Assembly: GCF_032062105.1 (NCBI RefSeq)
Contig: NW_026928842.1
Span: 62,001-126,000 of the forward strand
From: Saccostrea cucullata
Lineage: Eukaryota
DNA length: 64,000 bases
Direction: 5' to 3'
Shown here piece by piece: positions 6,280 to 22,200 of the stretch; the first letter of the stretch is position 1; every line of letters starts with the position of its first letter. The notes under the pieces are model-generated. The model saw nothing but the letters and a program-made list of their open reading frames with translations. It did no database searches and was not told where the DNA came from. The translations under genes were made by a program, and so were the position numbers.

Positions 6280-9124
6280 ATTCCAAGTACAGAGGATTTT
6301 TGGAACGGCTATCAAAAGCATTAGAAGAACATTTGGCTGTCATTAATTACATTCCTGGATCGTTTAATGAAGAAGAAGCCAGGAGGATTTTAGGTATTTT
6401 TATAAAATGTCTTTTATTGTGGTCAATAAATGAGTAAATAAAGTGATAAAGTATTGAAATAGATTTCATTCTTTTGTTCATTGCCAGGACTTTCCGATAA
6501 AGAAAGTCAAGATTCATTGCAAGGGTTGCTTCAACGCCATTTTGTGTCGATTGAACGTGGAGAGAGATTCAACATTCATGGAATTTTGCGAGATTGCATT
6601 AGAGAATATTTGAAAATTAAAGATTTAAAAGGTAAATAGCGCCTGATAAATATTTACACAGGTACATGCGACTCCTCGTCTGCTATTCAACCCGGGATCT
6701 TGACTGACATTTTTTTCTTCACAGATTTCATTTCACATACCTATCTATCAAGATTATCACAAGAAAAATTGTGAACCCCCTAATTATAAAATAACCATTC
6801 CAACCAAAAATTCCCTACTACACATTTTCTCTTTTATGATTTACAATAGAGAAGCTTTTGTATGGAGCAATTATTTTGACTCTTTCCTGATTTTTCCTAC
6901 ATTATATAATACATATATATGATAATAACATACATACTTTGCCATGAAATATAATGTCTAACGAGCTCTTGGTTGATTTTTTTTTAGATTGGGCGTCCTG
7001 TCCACGAGTGCTTGTGAGATTAAGTAGAAATAAATATAACTTAGAAATGTTTCATTCTCGCTACTCCATTTTCTCCATTTTATAGGTGTTAGAACCAGGT
7101 TTTGCCATACTTTTGCAAATATATTAAAAGAAATAGAACACAAATCACAGACAGAAGATTACGCAGGCGCTATGTGCATGCTGAATGTGGAACACCAGAA
7201 TTTTCAACAACTTTTCACTGACGTCATTCACTGTACAGAGGATACGTACCCCGTGTTTGTAGATTTAGCCGCCACCACCATCTCAGATGGAGCCGTTCTC
7301 TTTACTGCCATGGCAACTTACGGTACAACTACATGTATATTGAAAAAGAAATAATTTCAGAGAATTCCCGCTGAAACTGTAATCTTTGATAATTATGAAA
7401 AAAATAGATTAAGATATATATAAAATGATTGATTTTTTCTTTTATCACAGAGTTTGGTATAGAATATTTCGAGAAATGCTTGCAAAAAACCAGAGAGTTT
7501 AAAGCAGAAATAGATGAATCAAAAGTTTTGACGGGATATGATTGAAATATAAAGGTAAAACAGAAAAAAAATTATCACTAGAAATATTACACAGACATAT
7601 TTTTACTTATTCGTTTTTATTTAACTTAAAAAATGAAATCAATTTTAGGGAAATTACGATGAGGGAGAGAAAAAGTTTCGCGTTGCTTTTGAATTAAGAA
7701 ATCAGCATCCAGAAAACAGAGATTTTTATCTCGCCTTGTTATGTCAGAGTTTTGGTTGGAACCTTGGGTGTCAAGGAAAATTTTCCGAATTTTTAAGGTA
7801 AAATAATATCGGGTTGTTATTTTCTTGGTTATAGATTAAATACTTATACAGTGTTGCTAAAGATTGCACGTATGGGGTCACTGAGACAATACTTCGACCA
7901 GCTGGATATAAATAGGGCTGTTCTTATTTATAAGACATAGTTGGATAATTTATCATAAAACATGTTTCCTTAGAATTGCAAATATACATTCATTGACTTT
8001 CTCATACTAGTATTTTAGAAATGGCATTCGAAATAGAGAAGGAACTGAAAATGTATTACGAACATCTTATCCTCCAAACAATGCAATCACTCGCAATATT
8101 CCACAATATCTCAGGTAAGATAAAACGTCAACAAAGCATATTGAGTTTATTACAGGTATAACAATACAAAGAATATAAGAATACCTTTCCATCTGTTATT
8201 ATTACAGGCGGTATAGGGAAAGGTGAACCTTTGCAACTGGAAGTGTTAAGACGAAGACTTCATGTGATTGGAACCGAGAAACATCCGATTATAGGTTCTG
8301 TGATGAACAACATGGGAATCATGTATAAAAACAAAGGAGACCACGAAAAAGCCGCCCATTTCTTTCAAAAGAGTCTAGACATAAAATTGGAGACAAATGC
8401 GCCTTTAAAGGCTATAATATTCTCTGAAAGAAATGTTGCAGAGAATTTAATAGAAATAGGAGAATATGAAAAGGTCATAGCATTGCTAACCAATAGTCTT
8501 GAGCGGTTTGAAAATATTCCAGATCTCTACTATGATGTCAGGTCTATGCTTTATGAGACACTTGGAAAGGCTTACTCAAGATCAGGAAATTTTGAAAATG
8601 CAGCATCATCTTATAAAAAAGCGCTCGAATTGCGATATAAAATATCCCTGTGTGATCTCACTTTACTTGCTTTAGCCTACGATTATTCAAAGTGTCTGAT
8701 ATCGCTCGGAAAAAATGAGAAAGCTAAAAGGGTTTTACAGCGTGAATTACGGTTATGTGACCTCATCATTGAACAAGACCAAACCAATCTTATCATTATT
8801 GATTGCCTAATATTGTTGATGGATGTTAACTTCACCCTTGGATTGAGAGAGGAACTGGTACTCACCTTCAGTCGAGTGAAGGATGAGTTACATCGACTGA
8901 TCCTAGTATTTGAAAATTTAAGGAATTTCAATAAACGCGAAGAGATGTCTGAACGTCTAAGAACACTGAAACTTAAATATGATGATATGATGAAAGTGTT
9001 TGAGAATTGTGGCGAAGCGCGATCAGCACGCTCATTTGAGCCAAATGTAGTGTTCTATTCTTTATGTTTAATCAAAGTATGCCTCTTTATTATCACTGCC
9101 TATATGAAAACAAAAAATAAGTAA
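6280..9124 (+). pseudogene. STAND-TPR paralog copy 1: P-loop exon absent, premature stop
   Basis: Exons 6280-6393, 6488-6631, 7086-7322, 7451-7554, 7649-7797, 8011-8114 and 8208-9124 match exons 2-8 of copies 2/3 in size and phase. Exon 7451-7554 is 9 bp shorter and has an in-frame TGA at 7543-7545. No Walker A/B exon found in 1-6279. Confidence 0.8.
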
Positions 9125-9245
9125 AGATTTAAATATTAAGGTAGGATAAGCGTTGTATATATTTAATCTTTTTCGCTATGCAATCCATTTAAACTTCCTT
9201 AATCAAAGATAACATATCGATTCTGTTCGCTTGAGATTCGACACA

Positions 9246-21400: not shown

Positions 21401-22200
21401 ACGATATTGAAAATGGCGAACAGTTTCAGGTTGAATGTTACAAAAGAAGATTAAAAGCAATAGGGACGAAAAATCACCCAATAATGGGGTCTACGCTAAA
21501 CAACATGGGTTGCATGTTTTTAAGAAAAGGTGACATAAATACAGCACTCGACTATCAAAGACAAGGTTTAGAAATAAAGATTTCAACAGGAGCCCCAGTG
21601 AAAGACATAGCTCTCTCTGAAAGGGATCTTGCAGAAACCATTTTAGCTAAAGGAGACTATAGTGAAGCCATTACACTGTTGGATCAAGCGCTCACTCGTC
21701 TACAAGGATTTCCCGGACTTTTTGATGACGCCAAGGTCTTGTTATTAAAAACAAAAGGGAAATGTTATTTCAAAGCACGTGCATATTCTGAAGCAGGTAG
21801 ACATTTCCAAAAGGCCATTGATCTGAAATTGAAAACATGCGAAGAAGATAGCTTTATGGTAAAATTATATTGCTTATATGCAGATGTTCTCCTTGCTCTT
21901 GGAGAAAATGCAAAGGTGGTCAGAATATTGGAAAAGGCCCTTTTTAGAAAAGACAGTTTCATTCAACAGACACCTACAAATAAAAGTTTATTTCATTCAT
22001 ACAGAATTTTACTCGAGGCACATTTTTCTTTAGGGAACAGGGAGGAATTGTTTAGAACATATTATGATGGATGTTTTGAATTGCAAAGACTGATTAAGGT
22101 TTTTGAAGAAGTTCCGAATTTTTATAGAAGAGCGGAGATGTCAGAAAATCTTCAAAAATTCACAGAAAGATTTAAAGAAATGAAAAGATTTTTAGATTAA
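18461..22200 (+). CDS. NB-ARC-like STAND ATPase + TPR repeat protein, copy 3 (~793 aa, 8 exons, no hydrophobic tail)
   Basis: Exons 18461-19181, 19564-19677, 19940-20086, 20218-20451, 20537-20649, 20965-21113, 21201-21304 and 21401-22200, total 2382 nt in frame. Motifs: FVGRRREL, GLKGIGKS, LLVLDNAE, CEGIPLAL, RYDIHGILR and TPRs. Same intron phases as copy 2. Confidence 0.9.

Follow-up and report, generated by a model that had tools for sequence, protein, structure and literature searches.

The stretch analysed here, a window of 64,000 nucleotides, carries at 6280-22200 three paralogs on the forward strand, all of one gene type, a STAND gene with an NB-ARC (AP-ATPase) domain and TPRs. On balance, they probably represent a small, old, tandem mollusc family of NB-ARC-TPR proteins without an N-terminal head, which would act as conserved ligand-gated oligomerising switches and have their role outside a diversifying pathogen-receptor array. 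As read from their sequence, copies 2 (tail-anchored) and 3 (soluble) are functional genes. The coordinates are collected in Table 1.

Table 1. Features of the array; positions are those of the window unless the contig is named.
Feature	Position	Strand	Remarks
Decayed inverted copy	contig 1.7-9.9 kb		upstream of window
3' fragment copy	contig 18.1-19.45 kb		upstream of window
Copy 0	contig 25.8-34.2 kb		upstream of window; NTPase exon internally deleted
Copy 1	6280..9124	+	pseudogene in present assembly; from exon homology
Copy 1 exons 2-8	6280-6393, 6488-6631, 7086-7322, 7451-7554, 7649-7797, 8011-8114, 8208-9124	+	
In-frame TGA in copy 1 exon 5	7543..7545	+	adjoins 9-nt deletion
Copy 1 C-terminal hydrophobic tail, then basic residues	9047..9121	+	tail-anchor type; Kyte-Doolittle 19-residue mean 2.21
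Spacer, copy 1 stop to copy 2 ATG	9125..9245	+	121 nt; contains in-frame TAA 9210-9212
Copy 2, LOC134278901	9246..13193	+	intact; 2472 nt = 823 codons + stop
Copy 2 exon 1	9246-9942	+	NB-ARC NBD + HD1
Copy 2 exon 2	10172-10285	+	
Copy 2 exon 3	10365-10508	+	WHD with D-I-H-G 'MHD-like' motif
Copy 2 exons 4-7	10698-10934, 11056-11168, 11455-11603, 11908-12011	+	
Copy 2 exon 8	12280-13193	+	TPR + tail
Copy 2 C-terminal tail anchor (predicted)	13110..13190	+	hydrophobic helix, then K-I-K-E-Q; Kyte-Doolittle 19-residue mean 2.37
Copy 3, LOC134278903	18461..22200	+	intact; 793 aa; soluble
Copy 3 stretches identical to P0151, first four	18461-19180, 19563-19679, 19936-20088, 20220-20450	+	whole codons
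Copy 3 stretches identical to P0151, then stop	20539-20649, 20965-21120, 21202-21303, 21400-22197	+	whole codons

The copies were searched exon by exon; where a full-length sequence was needed, the database proteins P0158, P0151 and P0157 were used instead. Compared copy against copy with tblastn, they match at E values of 1e-22 to 1e-74, and their NTPase and TPR exons are 36-45% identical. Copies 2 and 3 have an 8-exon plan in common, of which copy 1 retains exons 2-8 only. The initial annotation had described three paralogs with one exon structure; the exons are indeed homologous by tblastn and Pfam, but copy 1 has no exon 1, and its exon 5 is short and carries a TGA. The array extends beyond the window to three further broken copies upstream, so that the contig holds two intact and four broken copies, tandem duplicates with pseudogenes. 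In the whole 1.17 Gb assembly there are about 5 loci with the NTPase exon. As a counterpoint to a conserved switch, an immune locus, too, can look like a tandem array in which four copies are dead. The M. gigas ortholog is LOC105348342. Searches by locus or accession name, supplementary tables apart, found no paper naming these loci, and broader searches gave only general NB-ARC/TPR papers.

An ORF on the reverse strand between copies 2 and 3 (13939-14634) was tried as a trans effector or adaptor and rejected: it has no Pfam match, its best Atlas score of 0.81 is below the useful level, and it is probably not a gene. No conserved neighbouring effector gene was found at the locus.

Copy 2 has AG/GT splice sites throughout, and its exon sum is divisible by 3. 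Splicing was followed in RNA contigs from a related organism, most of them 90-95% alike, which inform on splicing and not on starts, levels or expression in the present species; the sequencing runs contain 5-10% of the sampled words. All copy 2 introns are seen as joints in these contigs, and none of the three wholly intronic bins (11250-11449, 11650-11849 and 12050-12249) has any depth in any of the 4 runs. The database model P0158 (775 aa), which is without exon 3, matches the copy 2 exons at 93-100% by tblastn, the values below 100% coming from alignments that run a few residues beyond the exon ends. The exon 3-skipped form is absent among the 15 RNA joints listed. Copy 3 matches P0151 exactly over all 793 residues, split codons excepted, and its 5' end is that of the database model only.

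The two intact copies differ at their C-termini. A single hydrophobic helix at most about 30 residues from the C-terminus, the feature of a tail anchor, is found in copies 1 and 2 and not in copy 3, whose tail has a Kyte-Doolittle mean of 0.12. The remainder of the copy 1 and copy 2 proteins stays at Kyte-Doolittle values of 1.8 or below, with no other TM segment, and the model of the ortholog P0157 has an equivalent terminal helix at 796-822. Copies 1 and 2 belong to one oyster clade, which has a predicted membrane tail anchor. The proposed split into membrane-anchored, soluble and decayed forms holds, with copies 1 and 2 anchored by their predicted tails, copy 3 soluble, and copy 1 and the upstream copies decayed.

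By its sequence copy 1 is recently dead, with the NTPase exon deleted and a premature stop in exon 5. Its exon 2 acceptor falls at position 6280, its splice sites are all AG/GT, and its exons are as long as those of copy 2 except exon 5, which is 9 nt shorter (104 versus 113 nt). At the stop it reads ...VLTGYD*NIK, where all relatives read ...VLTGYGRVLTNIK, and the related organism's RNA contigs have at the exon 5 joint the 21 letters that are missing or diverged in copy 1. An ortholog of copy 1, P0162, is 812 aa long and carries the source label S. echinata; its NTPase N-terminus is absent from the window. No NTPase exon for copy 1 was found in window positions 1-6300, either by tblastn with four NTPase exons at E<=50 or by blastn at word size 7; the P0162 N-terminus had no match as a copy 1 exon 1 in the window or the fetched loci, and queries with copy 2 exon 1 and P0162 found no such exon elsewhere in the assembly. 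A second haplotig, C4829 (96.6% identical and collinear with window 1-6938), is also without it.

The profile check suggested in the initial annotation came out as expected, with both domains above the Pfam cut-offs and NB-ARC in copies 2 and 3 only. NB-ARC scores 53.5 bits in copy 2 exon 1 and 24.7 bits in copy 3 exon 1 (cut-off 23.5), and TPR_12 scores 51-67 bits in the last exons of all three copies. NACHT scores 20.8 bits against the 53.5 of NB-ARC and the repeats are TPR_12, not LRR, so the proteins do not have the features of a bona fide animal NLR, defined as NACHT plus LRR (PMC3879445). CARD and WD40 gave no Pfam matches, and the layout of Apaf-1 is therefore absent. In the PDB, a single-sequence search reached the TPR part alone, with kinesin light chain TPRs dominating the matches, and a family profile was therefore needed for the NB-ARC part; it found the STAND-TPR protein PH0952 (6mfv) at 1e-20 and Roq1, MLA13 and NRC1 at about 1e-11.

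The fold was computed with AlphaFold on the ortholog P0157, which is 74% identical to copy 2 (pLDDT 89.6, pTM 0.80). The model shows five NBD strands, HD1, WHD, an arm, the TPRs and a terminal helix, and its NBD-HD1-WHD fold is that of Apaf-1, CED-4 and plant NLRs. The best Foldseek matches are 6mfv, the NRC3, NRC4 and ZAR1 resistosome protomers, Apaf-1, CED-4 and Avs3. Profiles and predicted fold together place the family among the STAND NTPases of the NB-ARC (AP-ATPase) clade, with a predicted NBD, HD1, winged helix, helical arm and kinesin-light-chain-type TPR.

The locus had been proposed as a birth-and-death array of NLR-like innate immune sensors, in which diversifying TPRs would detect pathogen molecules and separate adaptors would signal. 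We regard this as possible but doubtful, and the immune-receptor reading of the locus as weak. The tandem layout, with intact and broken copies on one contig, was seen as described. Congeners differ, S. echinata LOC133184984 (P0001) having no counterpart at the locus; copies 0 and 2 are a local duplication, and there are chimeric duplicated models in O. edulis and C. angulata. More distant relatives, in a Pfam scan run without P0031, have HNH, CHAT, HEPN_DZIP3 or DUF4559 heads, which are typical of conflict systems, and the NB-ARC fold is common to plant NLRs and Avs3. Against this stand the few NTPase-exon loci in the genome and the age of the paralog lineages, which in the tree are older than the split of the oyster species, with 1:1 orthologs in other oysters. 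The tree was built from 24 named proteins and the translation of copy 1 exon 8; it left out P0011, P0002 and P0160 as isoforms or near-duplicates and P0005, P0177, P0180 and P0191 as chimeric models. In 7 of 7 pairs the NBD is less conserved than the TPR region and arm, a pattern opposite to that of arms-race NLRs. Among the 40 of 387 differences from the relative that were listed, synonymous ones prevail over non-synonymous ones, at 24:4 in copy 1 and 9:3 in copy 2. Neither rapid lineage-specific turnover nor a hypervariable sensor was found in the tree, the seven pairs or the differences listed, and the family, judged from its sequences, evolves as conserved housekeeping-type switches and not as fast-changing pathogen receptors. 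That the TPR sensor changes more slowly than the NTPase domain points to a conserved ligand and to signalling output in trans.

The same contrast between the domains could mean that the NTPase is a degenerate relic and that the proteins are static TPR scaffolds or adaptors of the kinesin light chain kind, on membranes or cytosolic, which we consider unlikely. The NBD is the fastest-evolving domain in all seven pairs, kinesin light chain TPRs dominate the PDB sequence matches, and a copy 0 model without the NTPase (P0011/P0153) is annotated as a protein. Copy 2 has the sensor-1 Arg after T-S-T, but copy 3 and most relatives do not, and Walker B reads D-N instead of D-D/E, so NTP hydrolysis may be weak. 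However, G33/K34 of the Walker A G-x-x-x-x-G-K-[ST] and G187/P189/L190 of GLPL do not vary among the 23 members, 22 of the 23 keep the Walker B Asp, and copies 2 and 3 have all three. The MHD-type motif D-I-H-G-I-L-R-D at the end of the winged helix is found in copies 1, 2 and 3, and the MHD-like position is His in 15 of the 21 members with exon 3 (Gln in 4, Tyr in 1, Asn in 1). Copy 1, which is without the NTPase exon, also gained a stop codon, and this suggests that an NTPase-less form was not maintained at the locus.

For a conserved switch, we infer a mechanism from the fold and the matched families. At rest, the NBD and the winged helix, with its D-I-H-G histidine, would clamp ADP, and the arm and TPRs would keep the switch shut. 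A conserved protein or peptide ligand, probably endogenous or broadly shared, would dock in the TPR groove and open the switch, ATP-dependent ring assembly would follow, and the output would come from induced proximity, by bringing together partners that are recruited in trans. The tail-anchored oyster clade would produce this output at an organelle membrane, on its cytosolic side. A role in conserved cell-fate, stress or organelle-surface signalling is more likely than one in a diversifying pathogen-receptor array.

A bolder proposal, to which we give very little credence, is that tail-anchored copy 2 and its orthologs are organelle-surface death or alarm switches that stand in for the CARD-Apaf-1 missing in molluscs. 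A ligand-triggered ring on the membrane would gather 6-8 C-terminal transmembrane helices, and the effector role would fall to these clustered helices or else to caspases and adaptors that the ring recruits. It would be a resistosome- or CED-4-like machine built tail-first and not head-first, and the exon 3-skipping isoform, without the MHD histidine, would be its built-in regulator.

By the starts compared, the family lacks the usual N-terminal signalling head. The initial annotation had copies 2 and 3 start at the ATPase with in-frame stops just upstream, and both ATGs and both stops were read directly: the copy 2 ATG is at 9246, with the TAA 36 nt upstream, and the copy 3 ATG at 18461, with a TGA at 18452-18454, 9 nt or three codons upstream. 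The window encodes without a mismatch the database models P0158 for copy 2 and P0151/P0002 for copy 3, and these models start from the same two ATGs. Among matches of at least 700 aa with E<=1e-10, the NTPase lies at most 30 residues from the start in 12 of 18. The F-x-G-R motif has its first residue at position 4 of copies 2 and 3, and it falls within about 33 residues of Met1 in 22 of 23 aligned family members. A Pfam domain before the NTPase was found in 0 of 10 close homologs scanned, three of whose models are N-terminally incomplete or rearranged. In curated-pipeline models from at least 15 mollusc species, relatives have the same NTPase-first start, and longer models (1138-1141 aa) have the NTPase from residue 1 and their extra length on the C-terminal side. 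No splice joint into 9200-9260 is among the 15 of 16 joints listed from the close relative's RNA contigs. The CARD, PYD, Death, TIR, CC or enzyme domain at the N-terminus of a canonical tripartite NLR is thus missing, and database starts, homolog starts and RNA joints agree with the earlier claim that a fused effector is unlikely. In-frame splicing into exon 1, from an unannotated upstream exon or by read-through from an upstream copy, is highly improbable given these stops, joints, starts and C-terminal extensions, even though the spacer before copy 2 has no AATAAA/ATTAAA hexamer, RNA contigs from 4 of 4 runs are unbroken across about 8911-9265 and colinear with the genome, and an old M. gigas model, P0005 (K1PPD3), fuses the NTPase of a copy to the TPR end of the copy before it.

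Among known systems, the PH0952/MalT type is closest, with the same order of NBD-HD1-WHD, arm and TPR sensor; PH0952 (6mfv) is the best match both by family profile and by whole-length fold (774 columns). The available part of PMC6468293 describes TPR-sensor STANDs as having an autoinhibited NOD and effectors that may be at either end, and places the effector of PH0952, which binds DNA, at the N-terminus and that of MalT at the C-terminus, whereas the mollusc proteins have none. The latter are animal proteins from genes with introns, and some have a predicted tail anchor. For the NB-ARC fold of Apaf-1 the match has an E value of 1.7e-8, and that of CED-4 matches at 4.1-4.7 Å across about 360 columns. 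CED-4 is tethered to mitochondria through CED-9; the mollusc family, by comparison, has no CARD or WD40, has a TPR sensor, and would attach to the membrane directly. Molluscs are described as having no CARD-bearing Apaf-1 in the parts available of PMC11463336 and PMC5550854.

Plant CC-NLR/NRC resistosomes have the P-loop, GLPL and MHD-like His in common with the mollusc family, and the NOD superposes on the NRC3, NRC4 and ZAR1 protomers at 3.6-4.4 Å over about 350 columns. In contrast to plant NLRs, the mollusc family has no CC/TIR head, has TPR and not LRR, and is small and conserved. Bacterial AP-ATPase-TPR/Avs proteins (Avs3, 8dgc) likewise combine STAND and TPR sensor, but Avs have N-terminal nuclease or other effectors and the mollusc family has none. 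Some bacterial AP-ATPase-TPR genes have the effector or adaptor in an adjacent gene, according to the accessible text of PMC8195603, a layout that would fit the idea that the mollusc family signals in trans. The cnidarian and placozoan NB-ARC-TPR 'NLR-like' genes also have TPR or WD40 and not LRR and are often clustered; however, as far as the available sections of PMC6321704 and PMC3879445 go, they mostly have CARD, Death-like or DD heads and form large expansions, with 39 NB-ARC genes counted in Trichoplax sp. H2, whereas the mollusc family is head-less and small.

NB-ARC-TPR proteins of invertebrate genomes have been catalogued but seldom examined. Here, a head-less architecture is seen to persist in one mollusc family, in bivalves as well as gastropods, and one oyster clade has gained a predicted C-terminal membrane anchor. 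As a caution for similar loci, a tandem NB-ARC cluster should not by default be read as an arms-race immune locus. The family is a tractable candidate for learning how signalling by a STAND switch works when there is no effector in cis, and it may bear on NB-ARC-type signalling in molluscs, which lack a CARD-bearing Apaf-1 according to what is available of PMC11463336 and PMC5550854.

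The window is eukaryotic DNA with a G+C content of about 32%. It covers bases 62001-126000 of a contig 362,199 bases long; the assembly as a whole has 1.17 Gb. It carries one gene plan three times, all on the plus strand, between 6280 and 22200, and an all-against-all comparison of open segments found eight homologous exons common to the plan. Exon 1 matches Pfam NB-ARC (53.5 bits for copy 2 and 24.7 bits for copy 3, against a cut-off of 23.5 bits), and the last exon of copies 1, 2 and 3 matches TPR_12 at 51-67 bits. Paralogs are 37% identical over exon 1 and 38-45% over exon 8; with E values of 1e-36 to 1e-74, the resemblance is far above chance. 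The initial annotation had described a cluster of three paralogs here. These genes are real, although copy 1 survives only as a truncated pseudogene and further copies lie upstream of the window.

Coordinates of the gene copies and associated features (window positions unless marked as contig)
Feature	Position	Strand	Remark
Copy 1	6280-9124	+	
Copy 2	9246-13193	+	LOC134278901
Exon 3 of copy 2	10365-10508	+	skipped in P0158 (775 aa)
Copy 3	18461-22200	+	LOC134278903
Exon 3 of copy 3	19936-20088	+	skipped in P0002 (744 aa)
Decayed inverted copy	contig 1.7-9.9 kb, upstream of window		many stops
Fragment of exons 7-8	contig 18.1-19.45 kb, upstream of window		one stop
Copy 0 (paralog)	contig 25.8-34.2 kb, upstream of window		NTPase exon without residues 85-170
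Predicted tail-anchor proteins (six gene loci)			P0001, P0157, P0158, P0159, P0160, P0161, P0162
Tandem repeats 5' of copy 1	81-944		unit 166 bp, 5.2 copies, 90% matches
Tandem repeats 5' of copy 1	2398-2841		unit 131 bp, 3.4 copies, 88% matches
TRIM-type open frame	28451-33241	-	1596 codons; RING and B-box matches
Open frame	49277-50455	+	392 codons; no Pfam match at E<=0.001

The exons were searched singly, not joined, and database proteins served as full-length stand-ins. For copy 2 this was P0158, LOC134278901 isoform X2 from Saccostrea cucullata according to its source, which is 100% identical over exon 1 and 93-100% identical over the remaining exons used. Its N-terminus, M-A-T-F-I-G-R, falls at 9246, and its C-terminal end is a hydrophobic tail. 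Copy 3 corresponds to P0151 (793 aa, LOC134278903 X1) and P0002 (X2), with exact matches in eight stretches between 18461 and 22197. Both starts proposed earlier were read in the sequence: ATG 9246 with an in-frame TAA at 9210-9212 for copy 2, and ATG 18461 with a TGA three codons upstream, at 18452-18454, for copy 3. All copy 2 splice sites, as placed by RNA contigs, are AG/GT, and the eight exons of this copy total 2472 nt, or 823 codons plus the stop.

Exon 3 is skipped in the X2 isoform of both LOC134278901 and LOC134278903. Both the winged-helix hairpin and the MHD-like D-I-H-G motif are encoded by its 48-49 codons; skipping it would deprive the short form of the ADP-sensing histidine. 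Shorter isoforms also occur in O. edulis (X4, 775 aa) and in C. virginica (X3, 774 aa); in the family alignment the C. virginica form has a gap at exon 3. The skip is absent among the 15 joints listed from RNA contigs.

Those contigs came from a run search that returned 24 runs, each with 5-10% of the sampled words; four runs from three studies were compared with window 7250-13249. The contigs are mostly 90-95% alike to the window, so their source is a related organism and not Saccostrea cucullata. Each copy 2 intron is present as a joint in them, and depth is zero in three wholly intronic bins (11250-11449, 11650-11849 and 12050-12249), which shows that the run material is RNA. Such contigs show splicing and cannot reveal transcript starts; for copy 3, the 5' end is that of the database models. 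Of 16 joints 15 were listed, and none of these leads into 9200-9260. In all four runs contigs spanned 8911-9265 colinearly with the genome, a span that includes the stop of copy 1, the ATG of copy 2 and the 121-nt spacer between them. The spacer (9125-9245) holds neither AATAAA nor ATTAAA. These related-organism contigs cross the spacer in 4/4 runs, so copies 1 and 2 may be co-transcribed; transcription probably runs on from copy 1 into copy 2.

With copy 2 exon 1 as query, an exhaustive HMMER search returned 1157 proteins at E<=0.001, of which 46 reached E<=1e-10. Among matches of at least 700 aa at E<=1e-10, the NTPase lies within 30 residues of the start in 12 of 18. Every member looked up or aligned is a mollusc protein, 726-833 aa long; the sources are oysters, pearl oysters, scallops, mussels, Mya, Mercenaria, Haliotis and Gigantopelta. 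Of the 23 aligned, 22 carry F-x-G-R within about 33 residues of Met1. More distant matches are headed by HNH, HEAT, DUF4559, CHAT or HEPN_DZIP3, so headed kin exist; the clade described here is consistently head-less. Longer models from O. edulis (1141 aa) and C. angulata (1138 aa) also start at the NTPase, with the TPR block doubled by a partial downstream copy. Gene models and motif positions bear out the earlier proposal of effector-less genes: the head-less architecture is real.

Walker A G-K and GLPL are invariant across the aligned family, the Walker B Asp is found in 22/23 members and the MHD-like His in 15/21; the sensor-1 Arg is in copy 2 and absent from copy 3. The family profile matches PH0952 (6mfv, 1e-20) and, less strongly, plant NB-ARC proteins (about 1e-11). 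The predicted structure of P0157, an ortholog of copy 2 (pLDDT 89.6, pTM 0.80), has an NBD, HD1, WHD, helical arm and about seven TPR pairs; after these come a long helix, a disordered linker and, at 796-822, a terminal helix. Its Foldseek matches are 6mfv, NRC3/NRC4/ZAR1, Apaf-1, CED-4 and Avs3. Superposed on protomers of activated resistosomes and CED-4, the NBD-HD1-WHD of this model (m7957ffc8311c) deviates by 3.6-4.7 A; against resting NRC2 and ADP-bound Apaf-1 the figure is 15-23 A. An open-like state of the model could explain this, as could an artefact of the prediction or of the alignment span.

A predicted tail anchor, defined as a C-terminal hydrophobic helix (19-residue Kyte-Doolittle mean >=2.0) followed by basic residues, is found in copies 1 and 2 and in the seven oyster proteins of the table. 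The helix is weaker in the database protein P0153, and missing from the copy 3 clade, the C22020 clade (named for a locus on another contig) and every non-oyster member. Its confinement to one oyster clade makes it an oyster innovation.

Copy 1 is dead in this assembly. Its exons 2-8 have canonical splice sites and the lengths of copy 2, save exon 5 (104 vs 113 nt). A search of window 1-6300, relaxed to E<=50, turned up no exon 1, and neither did searches of the rest of the assembly. It is also missing from C4829 (L004), an alternative haplotig collinear with window 1-6938 at 96.6% identity, which puts haplotype divergence here at about 3.4%. Over exons 2-8, copy 1 shares 77-97% identity with its ortholog P0162 (812 aa, S. 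echinata per its source); the best match in this genome to the 219-residue NTPase N-terminus of P0162 is copy 2, at only 47%. Exon 5 of copy 1 has a 9-nt deletion and an in-frame TGA (7543-7545), reading ...VLTGYD*NIK where all relatives read ...VLTGYGRVLTNIK, and the segment is complete in the related organism's transcript. By arithmetic on record positions rather than letters, that organism's contig would reach about 650-700 nt 5' of copy 1 exon 2, the size of an NTPase exon. With 40 of the 387 differences from the relative listed, 24 of the 28 in copy 1 exons are synonymous, so the death looks recent.

Upstream, copy 0 has lost part of its NTPase exon, which is why its model P0011 (589 aa) begins inside the domain. 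Another contig, C13436, duplicates the copy 0 region, and C22020 holds a fifth lineage; the assembly has at least about five NTPase-exon loci, a lower bound. Partial tandem duplication is recurrent in several oysters. P0191 (O. edulis, 1141 aa) and P0177 (C. angulata, 1138 aa) run through a complete copy, exit before its tail anchor and enter a partial downstream copy (an exon 1 remnant plus exons 6-8), yielding NB-ARC + TPR + TPR + tail. In P0005, an old M. gigas model, two copies are joined in the opposite order.

A maximum-likelihood tree (25 rows, LG+G4) placed all oyster members in one clade (100/100) of five lineages. Copy 1 groups with S. echinata 185331, copy 3 with S. echinata 184983, and the C22020 locus with S. 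echinata and O. edulis genes (each 100/100); copies 2 and 0 group with O. edulis, M. gigas and C. virginica genes (100/99), and a single S. echinata gene is partnerless here. The duplications are old and subsequent change is mainly decay. Among the globular parts the NBD is conserved least, and the arm and TPR more, in 7/7 pairs (NBD 76% and TPR 91% for copy 3 and its ortholog; 64% and 77% for copy 2 and O. edulis). Arms-race NLRs typically show the opposite pattern. A TPR more conserved than the NBD argues for a conserved ligand. This pattern and the old 1:1 lineages speak against the diversifying immune array first suggested; an immune role is possible but unsupported.

Judging from the fold and the precedents of PH0952/MalT, Apaf-1 and plant NLRs, a ligand would open the switch and nucleotide would drive oligomerisation. 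With no cis effector at either end save the tail helix, output would have to be recruitment in trans or membrane clustering. A conserved neighbouring effector gene was not found, and a literature check, with supplementary data outside its scope, found no papers naming these loci. Two papers (PMC11463336, PMC5550854) describe molluscs without a CARD-bearing Apaf-1, so this conserved, partly membrane-anchored NB-ARC family, for which a part in cell-death signalling is a long shot, is worth testing there.
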